64,000 nucleotides of DNA, taken from contig OZ025732.1 in assembly GCA_964019335.1 (NCBI GenBank), forward strand, positions 310,001 through 374,000, given 5' to 3'. A program made the position numbers and the translations under genes. Each line of letters starts with the position of its first letter. The first letter of the stretch is position 1. The stretch is from Diplonema japonicum. Taxonomy: Eukaryota; Protista; Euglenozoa: Diplonemea. This document shows, piece by piece, positions 6,016 through 58,090 of the stretch. The notes beneath the pieces were generated by a model. It was given only the letters and a program-made list of their open reading frames with translations, did no database searches and was not told the origin of the DNA.

Positions 6016-7692
6016 TTTTTGTTCCTCATCTCATCTCTTTTTTTTTTTTAATAAATAGCCATTTTTTATTCCTCACCACTGTCATTTTCTTTTTTTTTTT
6101 CCCCTCCAACTCTCGCTGAGACGAAGGCGAGACTAAAGGTAAAAACGATTAATTTTCACCCCCTCTTCTAGGCCTTGCACTGAACAGTTTCATATCGCAG
6201 GCGTTAGAAAGAAAGATGGTGTAGCCGAAGCAGATGCGGGAGGAGCTACAGCTCGGCCCCCTGTAATCAATACAGGTAGAATCGCTTTTTTTTCTTTTTT
6301 TTTTCTTTCTTTTTTTTTTCTTTCGTGCAAACAAGTACAAAATGTCGTACCTGCTGGAGCAGTAGACAGACTTTGAGAAAGATAACCTTTTTTTTTTGTT
6401 TTTTTTTTTTTTTTCCCACGCGGTGTTGACGGTGCCTGCCTGTCTTGTAAGGGGCGGCCCTTACTTATTGTAATACCTTTTGGTTAAAAAGGAAGTCTGG
6501 TCTAGATGGTGGGTTTTTTTTTTTTTTAATTTTTTTAGTTCACTTTTTTCGTTTCTTTTTCGGCACGACCACCGAAGAAGGAGGAACGCGCAGCTGAGAA
6601 TCGGCGCAGGAGGTGGATGAGAAGGGCGGTCTCACAAAGACTTCCTTTAACTCATATTTTCTTTTTAATTTTTCCGAAAACCCAGAAGGGTATCAAAAGA
6701 AAAAAGAAAAAAAAAGAAGAGAAGAGTTTTCTTCACCCCTCCCCCCACCATTTTCAGTAAGCATTTCAACCACCCCCTTGGGCATACAGTGCACCGTTTC
6801 GGTAACGAGGGGAGTCAGATAGATTTCTTTGTTACAAATATTTATCTTTTCAAAAGATGATTTTATAACTATATGCAACTTGTGCCGAGCAAAGAACTTT
6901 CGCAGCTTTTTGGAAACCTTTTTTGCTCGTGCGAACAACAAAGACGTATAGTCATAAAGAATGATTTTTTTGATTAAATTCCTGCATTATACAGTCGCAC
7001 AAAACCGTCTTCGAAGGCAGGTGGATTGCAGGGTTTCGGGAGGGGTCGCGGAGAACAGCTTTTTCAGTCAGAAGAGAAAGGAAAGGAAGAAATAGCAAGG
7101 CCGGCCCACCTAGTGAAGAAGAAAAAAAAAAAAGAAATGCCCCAAGTGCCCTGGGCCCCACTGTTTTCGTGTGCAGTATTTATCCCTTTTCACCTGTTTA
7201 TCCCCACTATCATTTAAAGACCCCCTTTAATATCCTCCCTCTCCCTTCTCACATTCATTTCTTTTTTATTATTATTCTGGAATGATCATTAAAACCCTTG
7301 TTTTAACAATATATATCTATGTGGGCTTTGCTTCTAAGAACACAGAATAAAGAAGATAAGCTGAAGGGAAGGAAAGCCCCTTTTCGTCTACCCCTTTTTG
7401 TCTGTACGATAGGCCTCATACTATCTTTCACACACGTGCTTTTAAGACAGAAGGGGGGTTACGCACAGCGCTACAAAAAAGAAGAGTACGAAAGTTAAAG
7501 AAGAATTGAATTTTCTTTCAATGAAGATTGAAGGAAAACGAACTGTCCCCCCCTCCCCATTTCCCCCCTTCCCTTCATCCTACACACAAAGTACTCATTT
7601 CCTTTTTTTCTTTCCCCTCCCTGAACGGTGAGCACCCACCCGCACACCGAAATTTATCAAATTTTCTTTCAAGATGACATTTTTAATCTATA

Positions 7693-35270: not shown

Positions 35271-35602
35271 GGAGTCGGTAGGGGTGCTGGATGTGGTCAG
35301 GGCTGAACCTGTGCCTTGGGTAGACCTGCTAGGTACGCCGAGGGCATCTCTGTCTTCTGCAATCAAGTCATGTATGACCCTTCCCTCACGGAGAAGTCTG
35401 CTAGGTAGAGAGGGCGTGCTCCAATGGACTGAACATTAGTTAAACTAACCTATAGGTTACGCAAAAATAAAATAAATTAAAGAGGTAAAAGGAAATCCCT
35501 GATCTGGGACGTCCTGTCTTGTTCTTCTTCCTGCCCCTATCTCCCTTCAGCGGCTTCGGTCTTTCCTTTTTGGGCTGACCGCTCCCTCATGGCGCTCACC
35601 CG

Positions 35603-36483
35603 GTATCGAGGTGAAAGGAAGGGACTTGTTCGAGGTAGTTGATGAAAGGCAAGGTTGGTACAACGAGGGGGTCTGTGAGGTTGTGAACCTTCTCCTGGAT
35701 GCTGGGGTGGGTGGCAGGAGGAGGAGTCCCTTCACATGGCGGCCAAGCACAATCTTCCTTCTTGTGTGGACGTCCTCTTGACTCGCACTTCTGTGGACGT
35801 GAATTCAGCAGTGTCTTTTCCTGGCGATTGGAGAAGTACGTGCACAGCACTTCATCGAGCCACTTCTGGGGAGGTGGCGGCTGTTCTCTTGAGACACAAT
35901 GCAGATGTCAATGCAAGAGACGGTAGCGGTGTTCCTGTCATTCACGAAGCAGCATGTGGGAAGCAACCTGGGGGCAGGCTTTCTGTACTTCTGAGGTACA
36001 ATGCAGATGTGAATGCAAGAGACAGGGAAGGAAAGACTGCTCTTCATGGCGGCCGGTTCAGTCCTCACCCCTCTGCGACTGCTTCTTGAGCACGGGGCAG
36101 ACGCTGAGGCAGGAGACAACGAGGGAAGAACACCACTTTTCTTGGCTGGTTTAGAGGTGGCTGAAGTACTTCTTGAGCACAATGCTGATGTGAAGGCGAG
36201 GGACAATGTAGGGAACACGTGTCTGCACCACGCTGTGTCACACACTCGGTTTTATGTGTCACCAGTTCTGCTGAGACACAATGCAGATGTGACGGCAAGG
36301 AACGATGGAGGGGAAACGGCTCTCGATCTTCTTCTCTCTGATTTTAGGGACTTTGGGGCCATGCGATACCTGTTGCGGGACCCGAGTCTCGCTCATGATC
36401 TGGAGCTGTTCGAAAGTGGGAGGGAGCTGAGCGACGTCAGCAGGCTTCCTGTTGTTCAACGGATTTCAAGCTTTTTAAGTTGA
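35603..36483 (+). pseudogene. 5'-truncated, frameshifted Ubl-ankyrin family copy
   Basis: Colinear with 41530-42430; split into ORFs 35736-36089 and 36013-36483. Confidence 0.85.
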
Positions 36484-40724: not shown

Positions 40725-41230
40725 ATATATATATTCTTTTTTCCTTCTTTGTTATTTTTAGTGGGACGATGACAAGAGTGGAATGAGCGACGTCAGCAGG
40801 CTGTTGGGCTGATTTCAAAGAGTATGTTTAGTCGTCACCCCCATTTCGGTTGTGCTTCCCGCATTTTTCTTCTTTGGTCATTGCCAAGTTCTAAGATCCC
40901 TTGAAGGCCAATTTGACGGAGAGGATCCAAGAAGGGTGGGGCACAGCACGGAAGACCAAGGTTTGTACCTCCTTTTGAACGCGGCTCTTAGGACGTCGCT
41001 ACCGTTTGAACGGCAGAGTACAGTCTTCGTCACGAGCAAGCGATGCATGTACCTTCCTTATTTTTTGGGGCCTTCTTCCAGCATAGCCGGCCCCAAAAGT
41101 TCTTTTTTTGGAGATTCGTTCCAGTGTTTTGTTAGTTTCATTAGCTCTTTTGCTTTTGTATTTTCATTTTTATTTTTTTACTTCTTCTCAATTATTAACT
41201 TTGCACAAATAAAAGGGATACCACATAACC

Positions 41231-42463
41231 ATGAGCGGGAACGAAAGACCACCGACAGTAGCGCTGCAGGCGAGGCTCCCCACCTCTGAGACCATCAGCA
41301 TTGAGGCAGTGGCTTCGGAGGAGATGAAGAAGGTGAAGGAGAGGATCGCATCGATGGGAGGGTTGGATGTGGACATCTTCACCCTCACCTTCGATGGGGA
41401 GGTGGTGGCGGCGGCTTCTGATGACGGCGGTGGACAGCTCGTCGGAGATCTTCCTTTTGAGGATGGAAGCATGCTTGAAGTGGTGGTGTGCAAGAGGCAG
41501 GCGGCTCTGTTGAAGCTTTCTGAGATGGGGATCGAAGTGAAAGGAAGGGACTTGTTCGAGGTAATTGATGAAAGGCAAGGGCGCAACAGAGAGGGGGTCT
41601 GTGAGGTTGTGAACCTTCTCCTGGATGCTGGGGTGAGTGGCAGGGAGGAGGAGTCCCTTCACAGGGCGGCCAGGTGCAATCTTCCTTCTTGTGTGGAGGT
41701 CCTCTTGACTCGCACTTCTGTGGACGTGAATTCAAAAGTGTCTTTACCTGACGATTGGAGGAGTACGTGCACAGCACTTCACCGGGCCACTTCGGAGGAG
41801 GTGGCGGCTGTTCTCTTGAGACACAATGCAGATGTCAACGCAAGAGACAGTGACGGTGTTCCTGTCATTCACGAAGCAGCATGTGGGAAGCAGCCTGGGG
41901 GCAAGCTATCTGTACTTCTGAGGTACAATGCAGATGTGAATGCAAGAGACAGGGAAGGAAAGACTGCTCTTCATGGCCGGTTCGGTCCTCACCCCTCTGC
42001 TGTACGACTGCTTCTTGAGCACGGGACAGACATCGAGACAAGAGACGACCGGGGAAGAACACCTCTTTTCTTGGCTGGTTTAGAGGTGGCTGAGGCACTT
42101 CTTGATCACGGTGCTGATGTGAAGGCGAGAGACAATAGAGGGAACACGTGTCTGCACCACCCTGTTGAAAGAGGCTTGTTCGAGGTGTTACCTGTTCTTC
42201 TGAGGCACAATGCAGATGTGACGGCAAGGAACGATGAAGGAGAAACGGCTCTCGATCGTGTCTACTCTGACAACAGGGACAGGTTGAGGGCGACAGTGCT
42301 CTACGGGGGGGACGTGTTCAAGGCGGTGCGACACCTGTTGGAGGACCCGAGTCTCGCTCATGATCTGGAGCTATTCGAAAATGGGAGGGAGCTGAGCGAC
42401 GTCAACAGGCTTCCTGTTGTTCAACTGATATCTAGAGAGATTGGTAAGAGAAGGAGCCGCTGA
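41231..42463 (+). CDS. Ubiquitin-like domain + ankyrin-repeat protein
   Basis: N-terminal Ubl pattern (LQARLPTSETISIE...VKERI...FTLTFDG...FEDGSMLEVV); several (G)xTxLH...LLxHxADVNARD ankyrin repeats. Confidence 0.9.
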   Translation: MSGNERPPTVALQARLPTSETISIEAVASEEMKKVKERIASMGGLDVDIFTLTFDGEVVAAASDDGGGQLVGDLPFEDGSMLEVVVCKRQAALLKLSEMGIEVKGRDLFEVIDERQGRNREGVCEVVNLLLDAGVSGREEESLHRAARCNLPSCVEVLLTRTSVDVNSKVSLPDDWRSTCTALHRATSEEVAAVLLRHNADVNARDSDGVPVIHEAACGKQPGGKLSVLLRYNADVNARDREGKTALHGRFGPHPSAVRLLLEHGTDIETRDDRGRTPLFLAGLEVAEALLDHGADVKARDNRGNTCLHHPVERGLFEVLPVLLRHNADVTARNDEGETALDRVYSDNRDRLRATVLYGGDVFKAVRHLLEDPSLAHDLELFENGRELSDVNRLPVVQLISREIGKRRSR

Positions 42464-42602
42464 ATGGTACAGGTAGTGGATGAGAACAAGGGTGATTTCA
42501 AAGAGGTTTGCCGGTTTTAGTATTTCGAGGTATGATCACTCCACACGTGCCTCTCGTCACTCCCGGCAGCCTCTGGTCTCTGGCGCTGTTTCTTCATTTG
42601 TT

Positions 42603-42640
42603 ACCAACGATTCTAAAGCTACAGTTTCTGTACTTTATTG
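42603..42640 (+). other. Genomic copy of the spliced-leader exon (38 nt), forming the 5' terminus of LINE B
   Basis: ACCAACGATTCTAAAGCTACAGTTTCTGTACTTTATTG; 3' part CAGTTTCTGTACTTTATTG is the conserved kinetoplastid/diplonemid SL end; 5' part resembles the diplonemid SL (AACCAACGAT...) minus the first A. Confidence 0.9.
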
Positions 42641-42737
42641 GTGTCCGACCGTGCCAATAAAGTTCACACAGCAACGGTTTGAAAAGAAAATACAAATATT
42701 GGAAGTTGAAGCGCGACACAGATCAGCAACGTAAAGG

Positions 42738-42810
42738 AGAAGAGAAGAGAAGAGAAGAGAAGAGAAGAAAAATCGAGTCATATCAGATCATATCAGATCA
42801 TATCAGATCA
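42738..42810 (+). repeat. (AGAGA)n and (CATATCAGAT)n short tandem repeats in the LINE B 5' UTR
   Basis: Read directly from the sequence. Confidence 0.85.
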
Positions 42811-42852
42811 CAGCAAACACATTGACAATCTAAGCAACCGCGTCAGTCTAAG

Positions 42853-45096
42853 ATGGACGTTCACAAAGCTTTGAAGGGGTACGGGATGACAGCCCGCGGG
42901 AAGGGGTACGGGATTGGAAACGGAAACTCCTTCTACGGAGTGGTCGGAGAGAAGACGGGAAAGAAGGGGAGCGACGTTAGGCGCCGCATGATACAAGAGC
43001 TGCGAGGAAGCGAGGAGTACCGGGCGAGTGTCATCGGAGACTACGACCTGTACTGCTCCCAGCACGCCAGGGAGGGGACCGCCGCGGACCCGGTTACTAT
43101 CCAAGCCACCGCCCGCGCACTGAAGACCGACATCCACCTGATTACGGCCGACGACGGCGCCCTCATCGTCTCCCCTATCGTGGGAGAGTCCAAGTCCAAG
43201 AAGCAGCCCATCCACGTCGCCTTCGACGGCCGGGCATACCTCAACGCCACGGAGCCGTTCAACGTGAACGTGCTGAAGAAAGCTATGCAGCAGTTCAAGC
43301 TGCCACGGGTCGGGATTCCAACCTCAGACGGAGAGGCGAAGGCATGGAGGGGACCGAACAGCAAGCCACCACGGAAGGAACCGCAGGCAAAGAAATGCTG
43401 GCTCCTCGAGCAGGGACAGTTCGACCTACCCTTCATAGAGTGGGAAGAGCTGGTGGCAGGGAAAGATGGCATAGCCATCGCGACCGAGGTCAACGTGGAG
43501 GAGGCAGAAAAGATGCCCTGGGACGGGAACAAGGCAGTCCTCCTCAAACGCAACGGCAAGGGTCGATACGAACACGACGTCGTGCTCAAGGCGGCTGGAG
43601 AGTACTCGAACAGGACAATGTTCTTGCACGTACTGAGCGGAAAGATCTCGCGCTCTCAAAAAAACAAAAACACGGTGGGTATTGACCTGGCCGCGATGTA
43701 CACGCGGGTAGCTTTCGTCGTCTCGAAGACGCACACCCCAGCCCAGACTTGGGAGAGGGTGACCTCCGAACCCCGCAAGCTGGTCCAGGAGATGCTGGGC
43801 TGTAAGACGATCCACAGGATCGACAAGTACGTGGATGGACCGGCCCCAAGGGTTGACGTGCTCGTCACGATCGCAACCGAGAACCGCCGCCGCCTCGTAA
43901 GTGCATCCGGGAAGATGGGGATCTTCGTCAAGCCGAAGGACGTGGAGAAGTCCCCTGTCGCCTGGCTCCCGAAGGAGATCACTCTGGAAGAGGCACTCGA
44001 GCTGGCGGAGACTGAGAAGCAGGGGTTAGCGCTGCGCGAATCCGACGGCCGTCTCGGGGTGAGGACATCGGAGGAGAGGAAAACCACGCTCCTCGACAAG
44101 GTATTAGGCGAGGAGGAGCGACAACGCGGGCAGCATGGGGAGCCCAGGTGGCGTTTGTCGGGACTGTACGGGCAGTGCGGAGCCGAACACGTTGAGGCGA
44201 TACTCGAGGCGATTAAGTGGGAGGCCGTCCCACTACACGGCGGATGGTGCAACAGCATGAGGTGCTGGTACATCCGAGGGGGCGAACCCCCAACCACGTC
44301 ACTGAAGATCACGTCCCCAACTGGGCGGGTCCTCAACTGCAGGATAGCTCCCGACGTTAGAAACCCACCCACCAAAAAGACACCGCCAGCTCAGTCCTGG
44401 GGAAGGCCGAAAACGGGGACCACAAACAACGCGGGCAAGTCGTACCTCGGAGCAGTGACGGGGTCCTCTCAACCAGACCACAAACCACCAGCTGCAGGAA
44501 AGAAGGTTGCCCCTACGGGTAAAGCCGCCCCACCGAAGTCCGGTAAGTCGCCCACAACATCGAAGAAAGCCGATCCCCCGGCCTTTGAGGACCGCCTCAC
44601 AGCAATCGAAAACGCACTTCGTAAACTTGCAGGGGAACCGGTCAGCGACGTCAAGCCGCCGGCTGAGGTGGTCAGTCTACGGAGGGAGAACGCGGAGCTA
44701 CGGGAGGAGGTCCGGCAGATGCACATCCAGATGGCCGCGCTCACCGAGCAAATTAAGAGACTCACGGAAGCGACGCTCTCGAAGCCCGTCCCCGGGAACC
44801 GGGCCCCGATGATGCGCCCTGCTGCCGGGGAGGAGATGATGGACGACTCCGAAGATGACTTGGGTCCCCCCCCAACTGACGATGACACCGACATCGACCT
44901 GGACGAGGGCCCCGCCGACATTGACGACTGCCTGGGCAAGGGCATCTGCCACGTCTACAACGGGACATATCAATGCTGGAAGGGTGTATGCCACTACTGC
45001 GGCGGGAACATCACAAAGAACAACCCAGCACAGACCTGCATATTACCAGACTGCAAAAGGGTAAAATGCCGCGGGTGCGAACAATGCGAACAATGA
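42853..45096 (+). CDS. LINE B ORF1: pseudo-OTU N-terminus, coiled coil, C-terminal Cys-rich finger
   Basis: 747-aa intact ORF; GNGNSFY...VRRRMIQEL...TIQATARALKTDIHLI...IHVAFDGRAY; LRRENAELREEV coiled coil; CHYC...C...C...CRGC. Confidence 0.8.
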   Translation: MDVHKALKGYGMTARGKGYGIGNGNSFYGVVGEKTGKKGSDVRRRMIQELRGSEEYRASVIGDYDLYCSQHAREGTAADPVTIQATARALKTDIHLITADDGALIVSPIVGESKSKKQPIHVAFDGRAYLNATEPFNVNVLKKAMQQFKLPRVGIPTSDGEAKAWRGPNSKPPRKEPQAKKCWLLEQGQFDLPFIEWEELVAGKDGIAIATEVNVEEAEKMPWDGNKAVLLKRNGKGRYEHDVVLKAAGEYSNRTMFLHVLSGKISRSQKNKNTVGIDLAAMYTRVAFVVSKTHTPAQTWERVTSEPRKLVQEMLGCKTIHRIDKYVDGPAPRVDVLVTIATENRRRLVSASGKMGIFVKPKDVEKSPVAWLPKEITLEEALELAETEKQGLALRESDGRLGVRTSEERKTTLLDKVLGEEERQRGQHGEPRWRLSGLYGQCGAEHVEAILEAIKWEAVPLHGGWCNSMRCWYIRGGEPPTTSLKITSPTGRVLNCRIAPDVRNPPTKKTPPAQSWGRPKTGTTNNAGKSYLGAVTGSSQPDHKPPAAGKKVAPTGKAAPPKSGKSPTTSKKADPPAFEDRLTAIENALRKLAGEPVSDVKPPAEVVSLRRENAELREEVRQMHIQMAALTEQIKRLTEATLSKPVPGNRAPMMRPAAGEEMMDDSEDDLGPPPTDDDTDIDLDEGPADIDDCLGKGICHVYNGTYQCWKGVCHYCGGNITKNNPAQTCILPDCKRVKCRGCEQCEQ

Positions 45097-45189
45097 CTCC
45101 ATGAGGGCTCCCCCCAAACCCACCCCCCAAACCCATTCCCTCCGCCCCGTTCCCATCCTTCCAAATACAATCCGATACGCTTATCTGAC

Positions 45190-48100
45190 ATGAAATTTGA
45201 ACGTCTCACCGAACAGGGTATCGAACCCCACCCCGGACCAGAGCCAGAACACGAGAAATTCACCATTTTCACACACAACGGCTCATCACTTAACAACAGG
45301 CTGAGCGAGTACTCCACCGTCCTCCCGGACGCATTCTGCATCCAGGAGACAGCCCTCACGGCTCAGACGCAGCTGGAAATCGAACACGTGCTGAGAGACG
45401 ATGACTGGGGCAAACGATACGCCAGATTCTGGAGCAAGCCACAGCCAGGCAGGGAGTCCAGTGGTGTCACATCTCTGACGATAGCGAAACGGGGTGGTCT
45501 AGGAACCCTGGTGAAAAAACCACGTACGGCGGTGCGCTGTGAAACGAATGGGCCGCACAGGGACAGGTGGTCACACGTGAAGATCTCACTCGATGGAAGC
45601 AAACGGTGGCTTCACCTGATCAACGTCTACTGCCACTCGGGTCAGGACCAAGCCAAGACGAAATACCGTGAAGAGCTTCTCCACTACATCCTTTGCCGTC
45701 TTAAGTTCGAACTGGGAGACGTGCCTGTGGCCGTGGTGGGCGATTTCAACACGGACGAAGTACGATCCCCCACGTTAAGGAAAGCTATACAGACAGACTG
45801 GGTAGACGCCGCTGCGTTCTGTGCAAGAAGGGATGGTGTACAGGCGGAGGACACGTTCGTTAGGACCAACTGCAGCACGAGGATTGACAGGGTCCTGCTG
45901 AATAACATCGCGGCCCAAGGTCTCGAACATTGCGGAGTAAGCGATATGATCACCGGGTCGGACCACCGATGCTTGTCGGTGACACTCAACATCCCAGCTT
46001 TTCGTCAAGAAGTCCTGAGGTACACCATCCCACAGGAGATACCGAAGACCAAGAAGGCGCCTGGCGAGGTGGCGAAGGCACTGATGCAGAAGTCGAGGTA
46101 CCGGGAGTTCATAGCAGCACAGGAGCCCACCGAAGCTTTCTCGGAGATATCAGACCTCGCAGAGGAGTACCTATTACATGGGTACAAGGGGCCGACGCGC
46201 AGCGTGTACACCGGGAGAGGCAAAGTACGGGAACCTACGAAATCGGAGCTAAGTGCGAGGTCGGCGGAGTCGGCGGTCGGAGCGGCATCGAACAGACAAC
46301 AAAGACTGGAAAAGCTGAAGCACAAGATCCGCAGTGCGCAACAGCAAATGCTAAGGCTTTATGAAAACGGACACTGCGGTCCGCTGCCGGTAGAGTTACG
46401 GAACGTCCTCAGAAATATTGCGACACTAGGAGAAGAACTGAAGGTTGACAACTGCCAGGTGGACGCGACAGGGGGTATCGACGGCATCAGGGAGGAGCTG
46501 GACATAGCAGAGGACTTCGCTCAGGGAATGCTATCAGAGCTACTCCAATACCGCAAGAGAATGCAGACGAAGGCCTACGAACGCTCAGTCCGTGCTGACT
46601 TTGGGAAAGAACGCAAGCATATCACAGCCTGGGTCAGAGACCGCCCAAACCAGAGAACGGACGTGGTTGAGGTAGCAGACGGGGGGGTGACGGCGAACCT
46701 ACAGGAAATGGACAAGGTGATGCGGAACGCGTGGTCGGGCGTCTTCTGTGCGCGAACACTCGAGGAAGAGCCACAGTATGAGCGGTTTGCACAACGTTAC
46801 GGGGACCTGATCAAGAAAGCCCCAATGGCACGGACTCCCATCACAGCAGAACAGCTGAGGGAAGTGATCAGGAAGAAGCCGGAGAAAGGAGCATGTGGCG
46901 TGGACGGTTGGCGGATGAGTGAACTGAAGCGTCTCCCAACGAGCATCCTGAAGGCTTTCGCAGACCTCTTCAACCTGATCGAGGAAACAGGCCAGTGGCC
47001 GAGACAGATCACGACAGCACTGGTGTCCCTGATTCCGAAGGGTGAGGGGTCAGCACCACTGAATCATCGTCCCATCACAGTGACCAGCACCATCTACCGC
47101 TTGTGGGCGTGTACGAGGCTGAAGGGTGTCCTTGACTGGCAAGAACGCTGGATCACGCCGAGACAGCACGGGTTTCGACCCAAACACAGTACGACAACTG
47201 CCCTCATGGAGTTATGTACCAAGCTGGAACTAGCTCTGGTGGAAGGAGAACCGCTGGAAGGACTAGCCCTAGACTTTCGAAAATGCTTCGATCTAGTGCC
47301 ACAACGGCTGTCTCTCGACCTCATGGACGCCCTGGGGATGGACCAATCCATAGGGAGAGCACTCCAAGGGATGTACACCCAAATCACAAGGAGGTTCAAG
47401 TACCCCATAGGAGTGGGAGAAACATTTGAGACAACGAACGGCATTCTCCAAGGATGCCCCCTGTCAGTCATCGTCGTCAACGCCCTGTTGTCCATCATGG
47501 TGCGGGCAGTCGAGCAAGTCGCGCCAGACGCCGAAGTGCTAGCCTACGCTGACGACGCATACCTGCTGGCAAAGCTGCGTGGCTCACTACAAGCTGCGGT
47601 CAATGGGACATTGGAGTTCTGCGACCTGACGGGGATGGAAATCAACAAGGAGAAGACTGTTGGTTTCGGCACTGCTGAAGATTTCAAGTCGAAAGTCATA
47701 GGAAACCGAACGGAGATGAGGAAAGGCTTGGAGGTCGCGGTACCCTACAAGACGGTGACAGACCTCTGCGGACTGGGGGTGAAGATCAACACACGCAGGA
47801 CAGGAACGACGTGGAACAAACCGACCACGGGGGCGCTTGGCTCGCTGGACCGACTGGGGGGCACAAGGATTGCTTTCGAAACCAAAGCACACTTGGTCAG
47901 CACGACGGTCCTGCCATCTTGCCTATACAGTGGGCCGTTCTCCCCTCCATGTGATGAGGCACTCAAGAAGCTAACGACGAAGATCACTTGTAACCTGTGG
48001 GGCCCTCATCACCGTGGACGGTCGCCCACCGCGGTAAACACAGTCCTGCTGAAGGGGCACACCAATGACCCCCTTTCCTACGTAATGTACCACTCCCTGA

Positions 48101-49383
48101 AGGTAGTATCCGGAGCACTCGATGACAGTCGGCTACGGCAGAGATGCATGCAGATCGCTGCGGGGTATGACGCGGGTTCCATCCCGATGGGGCCGGTTGG
48201 CAACCTGGTCTGCCGGTGGCTTCCCCGAATAGGATGGAGTTGGGCGCAGCTACTAGGTTGCAACACATCTTGGGCCGAACGCGGACACATCTTTAGAGAG
48301 GTGGTGAGGAAGGCCCGAAGTAGGACGCTGGCGGTCGAGAGGAGCACGATAAGCGGGATAGAGCCGGGGGCGGACCCCAAGACGAACCGATTATGGAGGA
48401 CGGCCAAGGACCCGCTCATGTCCTACAGCCTGAGACGAGTGATCGCAGGAGGGGTTCCCTACCTAAACCCGCACGCAAATGCGAAGCGAAAGAGCGTCCC
48501 ACTGGCGCCTGAAGGTGACGACAACGGTGACGACGAGGAGAACATGGGCCAGGCACCAACGACGGAGGTATCGCACACGCAAGGATTCAGATGCGACCTG
48601 TGCAAGTCTCCACACCCGGACACGGTGACCTTACTCCGCCATCAGCTGTATGAGTGCGCCTGTGCACAAGAGGAACTGGCACTAGACGGAATGGAGCCGT
48701 TGCGCAACAGATCAGGATGGCCCCTATGTCTGGAGCTGCACGCGATACTGCCGAGGGGGCATGTCTTCGCACACCTGGAGAAGCTGCAGCGATACATGGC
48801 TGTGGTGGTCGGGAAACGGGATGTGGAGCTCATGCAAATAGACAACGCCAGCACACAGCCGCTGCCGTGGGTACGCAATGTGGAGGGAAGGAGATGCCTC
48901 GTGCCAACGGCGGGGGAGCTCGAAGGAGTGGGAGGAATCGTCGCAGAATTCCTGAACCCGCTGCTGCAGTGGTTGTCACAGCTACGATGGGTGAAGGAGG
49001 ACACCAGCTCTGAAGTGTCAGCGGTGGAATTGGCCATCGACTTCGAATGGACGACAGGCAAGTTACTGGGGGGTCTGCTGGAAGATAGGGCTCGCAAGAT
49101 CAAAGCACTGATAAGAAAGCTGAACGCGGCATGCAGGGCACGGAAGAAGCCACGCCCCTTCCCAGCAGATGAACAGAAGAGAGTGAAGTCCCTCATCGCA
49201 ATAGGTGGGAAGACGGCTATGGGTTTCGCCAGGAGGCCCATCTTCGCCACCCACACCACTCACGACAAGCTGATGGAACTGAAAGCCGCTTACAAGCGAG
49301 ACCGCATCACACGACTCCGCAAGACGCTCAAGGCCTCGATTGGAACGAAAGCAATGCTCCAGAAGGGGAGTATAAAAAGATAA
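45190..49383 (+). CDS. LINE B ORF2: 2A-like peptide + APE endonuclease + RT + CCHC knuckle
   Basis: 1397-aa intact ORF; GIEPHPGP; CIQET, GDFN, TRIDR, SDH; DFRKCFD, QGCPLS, YADD; CDLC...H...C; no RNase H seen. Confidence 0.92.
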   Translation: MKFERLTEQGIEPHPGPEPEHEKFTIFTHNGSSLNNRLSEYSTVLPDAFCIQETALTAQTQLEIEHVLRDDDWGKRYARFWSKPQPGRESSGVTSLTIAKRGGLGTLVKKPRTAVRCETNGPHRDRWSHVKISLDGSKRWLHLINVYCHSGQDQAKTKYREELLHYILCRLKFELGDVPVAVVGDFNTDEVRSPTLRKAIQTDWVDAAAFCARRDGVQAEDTFVRTNCSTRIDRVLLNNIAAQGLEHCGVSDMITGSDHRCLSVTLNIPAFRQEVLRYTIPQEIPKTKKAPGEVAKALMQKSRYREFIAAQEPTEAFSEISDLAEEYLLHGYKGPTRSVYTGRGKVREPTKSELSARSAESAVGAASNRQQRLEKLKHKIRSAQQQMLRLYENGHCGPLPVELRNVLRNIATLGEELKVDNCQVDATGGIDGIREELDIAEDFAQGMLSELLQYRKRMQTKAYERSVRADFGKERKHITAWVRDRPNQRTDVVEVADGGVTANLQEMDKVMRNAWSGVFCARTLEEEPQYERFAQRYGDLIKKAPMARTPITAEQLREVIRKKPEKGACGVDGWRMSELKRLPTSILKAFADLFNLIEETGQWPRQITTALVSLIPKGEGSAPLNHRPITVTSTIYRLWACTRLKGVLDWQERWITPRQHGFRPKHSTTTALMELCTKLELALVEGEPLEGLALDFRKCFDLVPQRLSLDLMDALGMDQSIGRALQGMYTQITRRFKYPIGVGETFETTNGILQGCPLSVIVVNALLSIMVRAVEQVAPDAEVLAYADDAYLLAKLRGSLQAAVNGTLEFCDLTGMEINKEKTVGFGTAEDFKSKVIGNRTEMRKGLEVAVPYKTVTDLCGLGVKINTRRTGTTWNKPTTGALGSLDRLGGTRIAFETKAHLVSTTVLPSCLYSGPFSPPCDEALKKLTTKITCNLWGPHHRGRSPTAVNTVLLKGHTNDPLSYVMYHSLKVVSGALDDSRLRQRCMQIAAGYDAGSIPMGPVGNLVCRWLPRIGWSWAQLLGCNTSWAERGHIFREVVRKARSRTLAVERSTISGIEPGADPKTNRLWRTAKDPLMSYSLRRVIAGGVPYLNPHANAKRKSVPLAPEGDDNGDDEENMGQAPTTEVSHTQGFRCDLCKSPHPDTVTLLRHQLYECACAQEELALDGMEPLRNRSGWPLCLELHAILPRGHVFAHLEKLQRYMAVVVGKRDVELMQIDNASTQPLPWVRNVEGRRCLVPTAGELEGVGGIVAEFLNPLLQWLSQLRWVKEDTSSEVSAVELAIDFEWTTGKLLGGLLEDRARKIKALIRKLNAACRARKKPRPFPADEQKRVKSLIAIGGKTAMGFARRPIFATHTTHDKLMELKAAYKRDRITRLRKTLKASIGTKAMLQKGSIKR

Positions 49384-49611
49384 CCCCCCCTAACCCACCC
49401 AAGGGCGGCCCTCCATGAGGGGGTTTGTCCTGCACTTTGAGTTTGTTTCGTCATCAGCGGCCATCTATCAGTTCCTCCTAGTGTAGACAAGCACTACGAC
49501 ATCCACACGCTGGAGCACATCCTCATCAAAGACCCGAAGAGGGCAATCAGGTACCTTCCTTATTTTTTGGGGCCTTCTTCCAGCATAGCCGGTTCCAGAA
49601 GTTCTTTTTTT

Positions 49612-53035: not shown

Positions 53036-53923
53036 GTGACTGAAATGGTTTTAAGTTAGGAAATAGATAAAAAGGGGTGGGAAAGAATAAATACTGCATA
53101 CGAAAACAGAGAGTCGAGTAAAAAAGGGAAAAGGTGACTGACATCCTCAAGAGGAGCCTCCCACGTACCAGGAATTAAGCAGAGGTTGCTTCCATGGCCC
53201 GTATCAGTCTATCGCCAGAAGAAATAATGAAAATAACATAACAAAGAGAAGGGGAGAAGAAACGGAAAAAGACGGCTTGGTCATCAGAGAGTGTTGACCC
53301 AAATGCGTCGGCGGACGCAGTTTAACGTCATACCCGGGACGGAAACCATGTTGGGAAAGCAGAAGGGAAGTTAAAAGTCAAGAAGTGGAAAAGGAAAAGG
53401 TGGAAACTAAAATCATAGGGTGCGAGGTCTGTGAAGGTGAGAGGAAGGGATTTTGTTTAGTTTTGTTTTTGAAAGAGAAGAACAAGAGATAAACGTGGGC
53501 ATCATTCATTCTATTATTCGTTGATCCTACTGTAGGTGGGGACGGCTTGCAATCCATTGAAAGAAGAAGAACGCTTACCAGCTTGCACAAGCAATCAGCC
53601 GACTTTTTTAGCAAGCAGGATGTCTGATTTAAAGGAGGGGAAAGAATATATTAATGGGAATCGTGGCTACCGCACGGAAGATCTTCACTTGTTTCGTCAT
53701 CAGTGGTCATCCATCATCGAACACTTCCTTCTGTATAGTGTCCAGCAGCCAAGGCTGCCAGCACATCCTTAAACACCGAAGGGCGATTCTGTTTCTTTCA
53801 GAGACAGAAGACCTACCCACCACAGCAGCAGCCGGCCGGTTCTTGATTATCTCTTTTGCTTTTTTATTTTCACCTTTTGCTTCTTCTCCATAATTAACTT
53901 TGCACAAATATAAAGGATACCAC

Positions 53924-56530: not shown

Positions 56531-56875
56531 TCAGACTGGTTTGGAAGGGAGAGGCCCCCTCCCGTGCGGCACGTGTCTGAAGTCCCTTGAAAGCCAGTGT
56601 GCGAGTTTAGCCCATTATATTTTGGCACTCGGTAGTCGTTGCAAGAGCGCCTGTAGGAGGTATTGGGCGATACAGCTAACGTAAGTATTGCCTGTCGGGA
56701 TGAGGATTGGTGTCGTTGAACTGGTGATGGGACTAAGAATCTCTTTTTACTTCAGTCTTGTTTCTCAAGAGTTTTCTGCCCCCCTCAACCTTCTTTTATT
56801 CATTGTCCTCTTTACGCACAACCTTATATCAGCAAACAACAGGATATTGAAGAAGAACAAGAAAAAGACAAGACC

Positions 56876-58090
56876 ATGAAAGGAAGCGAAGGACCACCGA
56901 CAGTGACGCTGCAGGCGAGGCTCCCCACCTCTGAGACAATCAGCATTGAGGCAGTGGCTTCGGAGGAGATGATGAAGGTGAAGGAGAGGATCGCATCGAT
57001 GGGAGGGTTGGATGTGGACATCTTCACCCTCACCTTCGATGGGGTGGTGGTGGCGGCGGCTGCTGACGACGGCGGTGGACAGCTTGTCGGAGATCTTCCT
57101 TTTGAGGATGGAAGCATTCTTGAAGTGGTGGTGTGCAAGAGGCAGGCGGCTCTGTTGAAGCTTTCTGGGATGGGGATCGAAGTGGAAGGAAGGGATTTTT
57201 GCGGGGTACTTGGTGATGACTGTTTGGGTTGGGACGAGAAGGACGAGAAGACGTGCGAGGTTATGAACCTTCTCCTGGATGCTGGGGTGAGTGGTGGGGA
57301 GGAGGAGGCATTTCACTTTGTGATCGAGCACGATCTTCCTTCTTGTGTGGAGGTCCTCTTGACTCGCACTTCTGTGGACGTGGATTCAGAAGTAGCTCTC
57401 CCTTTCGATTGGGTTCCGCGTACAGCACTTCACCGGGCCACTTCGGAGGAGGTGGTGGCTGTTCTCTTGAGACACAATGCAGATGTCAATGCAAGAGACT
57501 GTAGCGGTGTTCCTGTCATTCACGAAGCAGCATGTGATAAGAATTCTAGGGGCAAGCTTTCTCTACTTCTGAAACACAATGCAGATGTGAATGCAACGGA
57601 CGGCGAAGGAAGGACGGCTCTTCATGGCTATGCTCACCCCTCTGCAGTTCACTTTCTTCTTGAACACAAGGCAGACATCGAGGCAAGGGACAATAAGGGA
57701 AGAACACCCCTTTTCTTCGCTAGTTTATGGATGGCTGAAGCGCTTCTTGAGCACAATGCTGACGTGATGGCGAAGGACAATAGAGGGAACACGTGTCTGC
57801 ACACCGCTGTTGAAAGAGGTGATTTTATCGAAGTGTTGTTTGTTCTGCTGAGACACAATGCAGATGTGACGGCAGAGAACGATGAAGGGAAGACGGCTCT
57901 CGATCTTGTTCCCTCTGATGATGATGATGATGATATTCAGGTTTTGAGTGCGATGCGATACCTGTTGCAGGACCCGAGTCTCGCTCAGGATGTGGAGCTG
58001 TTCGAAAGTATGAGAGAGCTGAGTGACGTCAGCAGGCTTCCTGTTGTTCATTTGCTTTCAGGGTATATTTGTGACAAAGTCGAGAGGTGA
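56876..58090 (+). CDS. Ubiquitin-like domain + ankyrin-repeat protein
   Basis: 404-aa intact paralogue of 41231-42463. Confidence 0.9.
   Translation: MKGSEGPPTVTLQARLPTSETISIEAVASEEMMKVKERIASMGGLDVDIFTLTFDGVVVAAAADDGGGQLVGDLPFEDGSILEVVVCKRQAALLKLSGMGIEVEGRDFCGVLGDDCLGWDEKDEKTCEVMNLLLDAGVSGGEEEAFHFVIEHDLPSCVEVLLTRTSVDVDSEVALPFDWVPRTALHRATSEEVVAVLLRHNADVNARDCSGVPVIHEAACDKNSRGKLSLLLKHNADVNATDGEGRTALHGYAHPSAVHFLLEHKADIEARDNKGRTPLFFASLWMAEALLEHNADVMAKDNRGNTCLHTAVERGDFIEVLFVLLRHNADVTAENDEGKTALDLVPSDDDDDDIQVLSAMRYLLQDPSLAQDVELFESMRELSDVSRLPVVHLLSGYICDKVER

Follow-up and report, generated by a model that had tools for sequence, protein, structure and literature searches.

A group of diplonemid LINE families that carry the host spliced leader as their inherited first nucleotides

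In euglenozoans the spliced leader (SL) supplies both the cap and the 5' end of nearly every mRNA, and to our knowledge very few RNA polymerase II start sites have been defined in these organisms. A retrotransposon loses everything upstream of its own RNA each time it moves, so that it must solve the problem of its 5' end alone. The chimeric snRNA/LINE retrocopies that arise by template switching (the U6-L1 type) carry small nuclear RNA sequence at their 5' ends, the small RNA being joined to variably truncated copies. Retrotransposons tied to the SL itself are represented in trypanosomatids by SLACS, CZAR and CRE, which use a restriction-like endonuclease and insert at a single position within SL genes, with promoter and SL letters alike supplied by the target gene; SLACS is transcribed from +1 of the SL gene that it interrupts, and its RNA accordingly opens with SL letters (PMC3447711). 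Divergent euglenozoan LINE families and their derivatives (L1Tc/ingi/SIDER/DIRE; PMC8190864, PMC1874656) have a short conserved 5' head in common, namely Pr77, the conserved 77-nt 5' hallmark of trypanosomatid LINEs, which as an internal Pol II promoter determines where the RNA starts and binds the SL-gene factors TBP and SNAP50 (PMC8190864); Pr77 is not an SL, and the transcripts concerned have been described as unspliced and SL-less. Finally, in dinoflagellate retrogenes the old SL itself offers an AG to which a new SL is spliced, so that a full SL comes to precede the truncated remains, or relic, of the former one (PMC12014239, PMC7245778); these are retrocopies of host genes made with a foreign reverse transcriptase, in which relics pile up with each round.

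The element described here lies within a window of 64,000 nt (the whole stretch of DNA that was analysed), and its features are as follows.

42603–49441, + strand: intact APE+RT LINE, 6,839 bp, with a TTTGTT target duplication on both sides
42597–42602, + strand: left target-site duplication TTTGTT, the same hexamer as follows the 3' end of the element
49442–49447, + strand: right target-site duplication TTTGTT, repeating the left hexamer
42603–42640, + strand: DNA-encoded SL, corresponding to nucleotides 2–39 of the host SL and equal to the exon of promoter-bearing SL RNA genes
42617–42618 and 42623–42624, + strand: internal AGs within the encoded SL
42641–42671, + strand: GT...AG segment directly 3' of the SL, 31 nt (32 nt in one subfamily)
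42632–42663, + strand: anti-SL hairpin (5' arm 42632–42643, loop 42644–42651, 3' arm 42652–42663)
42672–42692, + strand: conserved motif (CAACGGTTTGAAAAGAAA...) closing the head of about 90 nt, from alignment between subfamilies
42693–42852, + strand: variable 5' UTR with short tandem repeats, (GAGAA)n and a 10-nt unit present three times at 42778–42815
42853–45096, + strand: ORF1, 747 aa, with its TGA stop at 45094–45096 and a Cys-rich C-terminus
45190–49383, + strand: ORF2, 1,397 aa, in the frame of ORF1 and with no further stop between the two
45220–45240, + strand: 2A-like IEPHPGP, ORF2 aa 11–17, with H at the N position of D-x-E-x-N-P-G-P
45322–45966, + strand: APE endonuclease in ORF2, aa 45–259 (Exo_endo_phos, E 3.8e-9)
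47032–47667, + strand: reverse transcriptase in ORF2, aa 615–826 (RVT_1, E 6.1e-21)
49384–49441, + strand: 3' UTR ending ...CACTTTGAG, without poly(A) or any other tail

The element is an intact APE+RT LINE of young age and without a tail; its host is a diplonemid, a marine protist that is very probably Diplonema japonicum. The limits of the element are those given in the original prediction, with the SL 38-mer at 42603–42640 and TTTGTT on both sides of the element, and the empty site proposed there is also found, in that removal of 42603–49447 leaves a sequence matching positions 53682–53716 at 31/35 positions (88.6%), the match being a short one. Stronger proof of the boundaries than this empty site is provided by 22 independently flanked copies with the same ends. 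The claim that the SL arrived with the insertion is borne out. The assignment as an APE-type LINE outside any SL array was likewise correct: in Pfam, ORF2 contains only an APE domain, N-terminal to the RT as in other LINEs, and the RT itself, with no restriction-like endonuclease and no RNase H, while the target duplications of other copies are T-runs and the loci are dispersed. This distinguishes the element from SLACS, CZAR and CRE, since it is of APE type, lies in dispersed T-runs, and has a whole SL exon that travels inside it; the L1Tc/ingi group has the same APE+RT combination, and a 2A sequence is present in L1Tc. The element has no long terminal repeats, either direct or inverted, and at least 40 scored element 3' ends, drawn from 460 first-look candidates, are at least 96% identical. 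Insertion takes place by target-primed reverse transcription into T-runs and leaves no tail. A possible avoidance of T-runs within the element itself, suggested by the longest run being only T4 in 6.8 kb, was rejected because a T content of 15.8% accounts for it. As regards the coding regions, ORF1 shows a weak, sub-threshold OTU-like match at aa 36–128, and no homologues of 0.55–1.75 times its length were found; for the RT region of ORF2, proteins from the D. japonicum transcriptome are 90% and 74% identical and those of D. papillatum 44–47%, APE+RT elements being present in Rhynchopus euleeides as well, and close relatives of ORF2 are encoded by D. japonicum Trinity transcripts.

That the 38-mer is the genuine SL of the organism is clear from six genomic copies of real SL RNA genes, in each of which an upstream block (...GGTTA) is followed by A plus the 38-mer and then by an intron of about 95 nt, which has a U-rich Sm-like site, a stem-loop, a T-run and a CAATAAA that pairs with the 3' end of the SL. 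Rfam gave no match for the SL RNA gene, and thus no known SL family model for it. The exon of these promoter-bearing genes is identical to the 38-mer of the element, as the original prediction requires, and environmental metatranscriptome contigs start with the identical SL; the published Diplonema SL differs from that of element and gene here at 2 positions (PMC3795323). The statement that the first A has been lost is also correct, because the gene reads AACCAACG and the element ACCAACG. In DNA unitigs (4 runs) the graph branches from the SL into the flanks of the SL genes, and there is a depth spike over the SL. At the element itself the hallmarks of an SL gene are absent: upstream lies the target T-run or TTTGTT and downstream the 6.8-kb element. 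Likewise, when checked against the six promoter-bearing SL genes, no SL-RNA gene promoter was found ahead of element copies, and since the conserved upstream block of the SL genes is absent there, any promoter would have to be internal. Only the general caution that applies to repeats favours an assembly artefact or a chance match to the 38-mer, and this explanation has a negligible probability. The 38-mer pattern has 218 genomic matches, as against none for the reversed pattern, and in the window the 3' half of the SL occurs once, as against none expected in shuffles; the 22 differently flanked copies have target duplications, which many copies share and which exclude a chimeric assembly; and contigs of six runs from two studies contain 66–80% of the words of the window.

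Of the 218 genomic SL copies, about 210 head retroelements or retrocopies. The 15 nt that follow the SL in this element have 40 genomic matches, and all 40 are preceded by SL sequence, which in 26 cases is a complete single SL. The junction is TG|GT, and the sole departure from TG before the post-SL start is a point mutant of the SL; the absence of an AG acceptor at this junction, which had been noted for the single copy, extends to every one of the 40 copies searched. Nor does any copy in the assembly have a polypyrimidine-AG in place of the SL, so that the locus is not a one-off. Among the 22 heads that were read, 15 start at SL nt 2, 2 at nt 1 and 4 at nt 3, and 11 bear an extra CC; these start states vary among copies that are identical over 1.4 kb, and one single-headed copy (L037) carries the first A that most copies lack. 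All 18 internally truncated copies are without the SL and adjoin a T-run, which shows that the SL belongs to the 5' end of the RNA template, whereas in the U6-L1 type of chimera it is variably truncated copies that are joined to the small RNA. Full-length copies starting at nt 1, 2 or 3, and truncated ones free of SL, uphold the proposal that the template began with the SL. The SL is an inherited part of the element that is passed on to new copies, and the RNA that is reverse transcribed begins at the SL's own 5' end. As for how that RNA comes to have its SL, transcription of the DNA-encoded SL fits the genomic data about as well as a fresh, cap-bearing SL acquired by trans-splicing in each cycle, and in its interpretation the original prediction is thus partly supported.

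These counts also bear on whether the SL-headed copies are simply dead-end retrocopies of a few sources that have a normal polypyrimidine-AG acceptor. This would be the default expectation from the dinoflagellate SL-relic retrogenes (PMC12014239), and ordinary trans-spliced mRNAs often have GT next to the SL (about half of those that start with G). It is nevertheless very improbable: a genome search for any non-T base before G+GTGTCCGAYCGTGCC found only a mutated SL, a hidden source would be needed for each subfamily (80–100% identity) and again for each sister family, and young, near-identical copies mix single and relic-bearing heads. The last observation implies that SL-headed copies are themselves transcribed and copied. 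Moreover, the ORFs are intact, there is no tail, and there are dozens of near-identical copies, which is not the state of passive retrocopies.

Relic-bearing heads amount to about 4% of genomic SL copies. In two of them a full SL is followed by the last 16 nt (C102) or 22 nt (C60) of an older one, and these relics start exactly after the two internal AGs; heads of the SL+16 type number seven genome-wide. Since such copies exist, the two SL-internal AGs do act as acceptors. In a further case (L046) the SL is joined to the base after an AG of the 42671 type, so that the GT...AG segment is precisely missing, while the sibling L045 keeps it. Re-spliced forms account for 3 of the roughly 27 heads in this family. 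Read-in transcripts are thus sometimes trans-spliced at the SL-internal AGs, or at the AG about 32 nt downstream, and are then copied back; the SL-internal AGs cannot, however, regenerate a single SL. A DNA-encoded SL at a retroposed 5' end, with relics such as those of C102 and C60, is what the present elements have in common with the dinoflagellate retrogenes. Where they differ is that they are autonomous LINEs in which one complete SL is the regular, conserved 5' end, with the addition of an anti-SL hairpin.

The head has a constant layout, consisting of the SL, then GT, then an element-encoded arm that pairs with the last 9 nt of the SL, then a short motif. The 5' arm of the hairpin is made up of those 9 nt plus GTG, and its 12 bp (10 Watson–Crick and 2 G–U) enclose the SL|GT junction; the z score for folding of the hairpin alone is -2.0. 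It is kept in families L028, L021 and L012, of which L012 has a different 3' arm that still pairs by means of wobbles. The hairpin, the GT...AG segment, the T-run target, the SL-internal AGs and the multi-family scale of the phenomenon formed no part of the original prediction. The SL and the following 52 nt or so are conserved across families whose ORF1 is 46% identical, and the 5' UTR beyond the head cannot be aligned between subfamilies; judged by this conservation, the head is very likely functional. The SL part is identical at 38/38 positions in all families, which calls either for strong selection or for repeated renewal from the genuine SL. Rfam found no ribozyme and no known RNA in the head. 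As in Pr77, there is a short conserved head across divergent families, the difference being that here it consists of SL plus hairpin and any promoter role is putative.

It might be asked whether the head was taken from an SL RNA gene, as exon plus the start of the intron, either when an element inserted into an SL gene or through a template switch to unspliced SL RNA. The GT directly after the SL would fit, as would an arm that pairs with the 3' end of the SL in the manner of the CAATAAA in the genuine intron, and there are indeed copies of unspliced SL RNA that lack a promoter and are fused to other sequence (L003; C30, C107). Set against this, the 60 nt after the SL resemble the SL RNA intron no better than chance (p 0.64–0.82 from alignment scores with 2,000 shuffles), leaving descent from that intron unsupported, and many ordinary mRNAs likewise show GT next to the SL, so that on the whole such an origin is improbable. 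The frequency with which ordinary SL-bearing transcripts begin with GT also weakens the case that the GT is a retained donor.

On balance the data probably reflect a group of LINE families with an inherited SL head, which goes back to ancestral trans-splicing and which may itself direct the upkeep of a single SL. In origin, an ancestral element mRNA would have been trans-spliced at an AG|GT acceptor and then retrotransposed, fixing the SL in DNA. One form of upkeep, which taken by itself we would rate at somewhat below an even chance, is that the head is a putative internal promoter or 5'-end-defining module. The RNA would then start at the first nucleotides of the element, as in other LINEs and with Pr77, the transcript would carry the SL without trans-splicing, and the hairpin would keep the SL|GT donor unused. 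More tentatively, the head of about 90 nt may be either an SL mimic, giving an SL-bearing mRNA without trans-splicing, or a capture device, in which the anti-SL arm guides a fresh SL to a non-AG junction.

Another, rather unlikely explanation is that each cycle takes a new SL from genuine SL RNA and places it exactly at the SL|GT boundary, and this can be framed in two versions. In the first, trans-splicing would take place to a non-AG junction, with the anti-SL arm positioning the incoming SL by pairing with its last 9 nt and bringing its 3' end to stack against the element's first G; in the second, homology would allow the reverse transcriptase to switch from what remains of the encoded SL to an RNA that bears an SL. 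The perfect SL in families so far diverged in ORF1, and a conserved anti-SL arm that ends exactly at the junction, would both be accommodated in this way. The same CC extras are found on outer SLs that are certainly real (L032, L030) and on single heads, and in another family, with gtcgtt/gtcgtc heads, the SL has been attached to one and the same UTR at several different non-AG positions. The first A of L037 is also more readily understood if SL RNA itself was the source, provided that the extra letters of that copy are not CCA. However, the junction is TG|GT, whereas 98.3% of D. japonicum introns are GT-AG (PMC12621601), and ORF2 lacks an RNase H domain, so that switching off a copied template would not be favoured. 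Template switching as a general source of the SL was rejected for this family, because the 18 inner-truncated copies argue against any general switching onto SL RNAs.

A sister family, which mostly retains only the last 13–16 nt of the SL, unrestored, also speaks against re-acquisition. Twelve of its heads start at SL nt 23–27 and have no CC extras, and 2 complete heads occur alongside them. That the short heads are an inherited state (Fisher test) was considered and dropped, as they lack CC extras and are not confined to any one level of identity, being seen in copies from 100% to 92% identical as well as in a more distant subgroup; a family-specific truncation hot spot in the SL's own hairpin loop, beside a T-run, fits as well.

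No publication on SL-headed LINE elements of this kind was found, and the families appear to be undescribed. A metagenome scan for SL+GT+anti-SL found nothing, and 120 environmental SL loci yielded no relative of ORF1 or ORF2. What the present families offer is several autonomous LINEs in which the SL forms the inherited first 38 nt, together with a conserved pairing arm, and hence a natural system for the role of the SL sequence on an mRNA apart from trans-splicing, as well as a way to learn how diplonemid start sites are set. The SL head also serves to mark retroposition, for which no marker was known in this group, and, as regards annotation, most SL matches in diplonemid DNA do not represent SL genes. 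If the mimic or capture reading is true, a mobile element would here be exploiting SL-dependent gene expression in a new way; in the mimic form, the mRNA would already bear the SL and hence the signals for cap modification and translation, and in either form the device may be common to several diplonemid LINE families.

The element at window 42603-49441, an intact LINE encoding an APE-type endonuclease and a reverse transcriptase, starts with 38 nt of the host spliced leader (SL), and its boundaries and reading frames are as follows.

Immediately 5' of 42603, + strand: left TTTGTT hexamer, adjoining the 38-mer
42603-42640, + strand: 38-mer (SL nt 2-39), sequence read directly
42853-45096, + strand: ORF1, 747 aa
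45190-49383, + strand: ORF2, 1,397 aa, with an N-terminal Exo_endo_phos domain plus RVT_1 (Pfam)
Immediately 3' of the last repeat base, 49441, + strand: right TTTGTT hexamer, sequence read directly

The position of the 38-mer, the flanking pair of hexamers, and the match at 31/35 positions between 53682-53716 and the junction left by deleting the element with one hexamer were all correct in the original prediction. Terminal repeats of the element were looked for and none was found, and its 3' end has no tail. The two ORFs share one frame and are separated by a single TGA (45094-45096 region); the 11-mer CTCCATGAGGG follows this TGA and is repeated in the 3' UTR (window 45094-45240 and 49411-49421), while a 2A-like motif, IEPHPGP, lies 11 residues into ORF2. 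A Pfam search with ORF1 gave no domain above threshold; there is a weak OTU-like match (E 0.01, below the cut-off), and some relatives have annotated OTU domains. The host DNA around the insertion is a repeated family (41228-42423 versus 35602-36470 and 56873-58050, 82-85% identical). One 153-nt DNA contig fits 42474-42602, that is, up to the last base before the element, and its remaining 24 letters disagree with the SL; one explanation would be an empty site (insertion polymorphism), another a paralogue.

That the 38-mer belongs to the organism's real SL can be judged from the genome assembly (G000; 62.5 Mb, 132 contigs, designated C plus number), for which genome-wide pattern counts are lower bounds. 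The 38-mer is matched at least 218 times, a reversed control not once. Six matches share a conserved upstream block ending in GGTTA, then A plus the 38-mer, followed downstream by an intron of ~95 nt that starts with GT. Within this intron there is a CAATAAA with the potential to base-pair to the 3' end of the SL, as well as a U-rich Sm-like site, a stem-loop and a T-run. The six include two tandem pairs, at ~350 bp. On these sequence features the six promoter-bearing loci are taken to be SL RNA genes, so that the SL comprises 39 nt and the element, beginning at nt 2, has lost the first A, as had been proposed. Many environmental transcript contigs have this very SL at their start and then a short UTR and ATG, and these together with the six genes identify the 38-mer as part of the true leader; the Diplonema SL in PMC3795323 differs from it at two positions. 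Only six promoter-bearing SL RNA genes are present in the assembly, as against ~210 SL copies on retroelements. Since four DNA runs give the SL a summed k-mer depth more than 20-fold that of the element body, the SL gene arrays have probably been collapsed in assembly. Three further loci (L003 at G000:C2:150557, G000:C30:484551 and C107:8896) have the SL exon and the start of the genuine SL RNA intron without the SL-gene promoter, and resemble unspliced SL RNA in retrocopied or chimeric form; L003, which lies behind a flanking A-run, joins ~85 nt of this intron to unrelated sequence containing an ATG. Metatranscriptome contigs with the same SL (L102, L117, L131, L143 and others) often start with partial SL copies in tandem, the SL 3' end being followed by SL from nt 6, a pattern that could reflect template switching during library preparation or genuine relics.

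If the window copy were a one-off retrocopy, other full-length copies should have an AG acceptor in place of the SL. The 15 nt that follow the SL occur at least 40 times in G000, and a pattern search of these matches found no copy with such an acceptor, because the sole case with a non-T base before the preceding G is a point-mutated SL. It is very improbable that the single SL is kept through hidden source copies with AG acceptors. A complete single SL is present in 26 copies (24 of the window's family in the broad sense, two of a sister family), none coinciding with the six promoter-bearing SL genes. The head, by which is meant the ~90 nt at the element 5' end, was read in 22 differently flanked cases, the remaining 18 of 40 being known only as 35-nt pattern matches; it starts at SL nt 2 in 15, at nt 1 in two and at nt 3 in four, with an extra CC between target and SL in 11/22. 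Since a tree of the first 1.4 kb shows starting nucleotide and CC state to vary among identical or nearly identical copies, these states arise at each insertion. All 18 copies truncated within the last 1.9 kb adjoin the target T-run and have no SL, so the SL is the 5' end of the RNA template and not an addition to any cDNA end; this, with full copies starting at SL nt 1-3, agrees with the earlier suggestion of a transposition RNA beginning with the SL. Among heads of the sister family, two are complete and 12 begin at SL nt 23-27, positions that lie within the loop of the SL's own stem and beside the T-run. This start is strongly family-specific; as copies of every age show it and these heads lack the CC extras, it can be explained equally well by inheritance or by a truncation hot spot.

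At the other end, 3' ends are far commoner than 5' ends (460 first-look candidates in the genome), and the 40 that were scored are each 96-100% identical to that of the window copy. Several full-length copies are 99.7-100% identical over the compared stretches, so the family moved recently; elements of this kind are also transcribed, as EukProt has D. japonicum transcripts whose protein products share 90% and 74% identity with the RT part of ORF2. The duplicated target in eight full-length copies is a sense-strand T-run of 6 to >30 nt, the element terminus ...CTTTGAG lies directly before it, and all 3' junctions have at least three T downstream. Priming by an A-rich nicked strand on U-ending RNA is possible; the window copy shows no sign of an extra T. 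The sense strand of the element has 15.8% T and a longest T-run of T4, which is what base composition predicts, and avoidance of T-runs was rejected on that ground.

SL-headed sequences extend well beyond this family, as a sample of 30 SL sites in the genome illustrates.

Types of SL site among the 30 sampled
SL genes: 3
Promoter-less unspliced SL RNA fused to other sequence: 1
Hairpin-type heads: 5
GC-rich heads of two types (starting gtcgtt or gtcgtc), not at T-runs, frequent near contig ends: 14
Heads of one further type: 2
Short SL-plus-poly(A) retrocopies: several

At many contig ends (e.g. L011, G000:C5:1-2052, and L004, G000:C2:998946-1000809) there is an outward-pointing SL-headed unit of ~200 nt, with a gtcgtt or gtcgtc head, a short UTR and ATG, which runs directly into long arrays of the 8-mer CCCGCAAA. 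Units and arrays alternate in these regions, and the C-rich strand of the arrays runs 5'-3' toward the contig end, opposite to the arrangement at ordinary telomeres; a chromosome end built by retroelements is one possibility. Short dispersed retrocopies consisting of SL, 17 nt and poly(A) occur at seven or more loci, and in a second type, which shares the poly(A)-proximal 9-19 nt, the junction with the SL falls at three different positions, all non-AG (examples of both types: G000:C1:657536, C8:835104, C9:67942, C16:62030; C17:633381, C44:64533, C20:670784). On G000:C24 the regular spacing, ~10.66 kb, of SL copies at 7178, 17837, 28496 and 39079 suggests a tandem array of long units, each with an SL head, while at G000:C101:338798 a complete SL 3' end, CCCTA and a second SL from its second base form two full leaders with a 5-nt linker.

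Some copies of the element bear traces of splicing. In C102, which is nearly identical to the window copy, a full SL and then a repeat of its last 16 nt precede the element, and in C60 the repeated part is the last 22 nt, these relics starting exactly after the two AGs inside the SL; across the genome there are at least seven heads of the first form and at least one of the second. In L046 the SL is joined to the base after the AG closing a 32-nt GT...AG segment that its sibling L045 retains. Since all three junctions follow AGs, SL-headed copies are sometimes transcribed from upstream through the T-run (a polypyrimidine tract), trans-spliced at the next AGs and copied back, with cis-splicing of the small segment an equal alternative in the case of L046. 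Spliced forms make up only 3 of ~27 heads in the window's family, and relics do not pile up as they would were re-splicing the main route, so that a route yielding exactly one SL must exist; the need for some means of regenerating the same 5' end had been anticipated correctly.

What such a route might involve is suggested by the head itself. GT directly follows the SL, and an anti-SL hairpin of 12 pairs with an 8-nt loop is formed between 42652-42663 and 42632-42643, the latter made up of the final 9 nt of the SL and GTG. The hairpin recurs in the families of L028 (ORF1 46% identical to the window's) and L021 (ORF2 fragment 54-59% identical), and in that of L012, where the 3' arm differs and pairing is kept via G-U. 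Because the SL and the next ~52 nt can be aligned between families and the other 160 nt of the 5' UTR cannot, even between subfamilies, the head is, on this comparison, a conserved module. In the reading ranked first, though held tentatively, the head would, as in most LINEs, fix the RNA start at the first nucleotides of the element by means of a 5'-end-defining signal or internal promoter; transcription would then include the encoded SL, and the hairpin would mask the SL|GT donor. The LINE precedent, the conservation of the head and the parallels with SLACS and Pr77 all favour this, the Pr77 hallmark of trypanosomatid LINEs (PMC8190864) being similar to the head in size and position. It is rather unlikely, if well worth considering, that a fresh SL instead replaces the encoded one, either because the anti-SL arm guides it to the non-AG junction or because the RT switches on the basis of homology; in favour of this, the SL is perfectly identical even between old families, the same CC extras occur where the outer SL of a head is certainly real, and one single head carries the first A.

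In the full-text literature on diplonemid SL and retrotransposons, relics, diplonemid genomes and SLACS, no report was found of LINEs with an SL as regular 5' end; the nearest published systems found were dinoflagellate relic retrogenes, SLACS/CZAR/CRE and Pr77, and in the genome paper on D. papillatum LINE and SLACS-like genes are listed, again without the SL-head feature. As to how such a head came about, descent from the SL RNA intron is not detectable on sequence comparison. Ordinary SL-bearing transcripts commonly have GT after the SL, and the simplest reading is that the head goes back to an element mRNA trans-spliced at an AG|GT acceptor.
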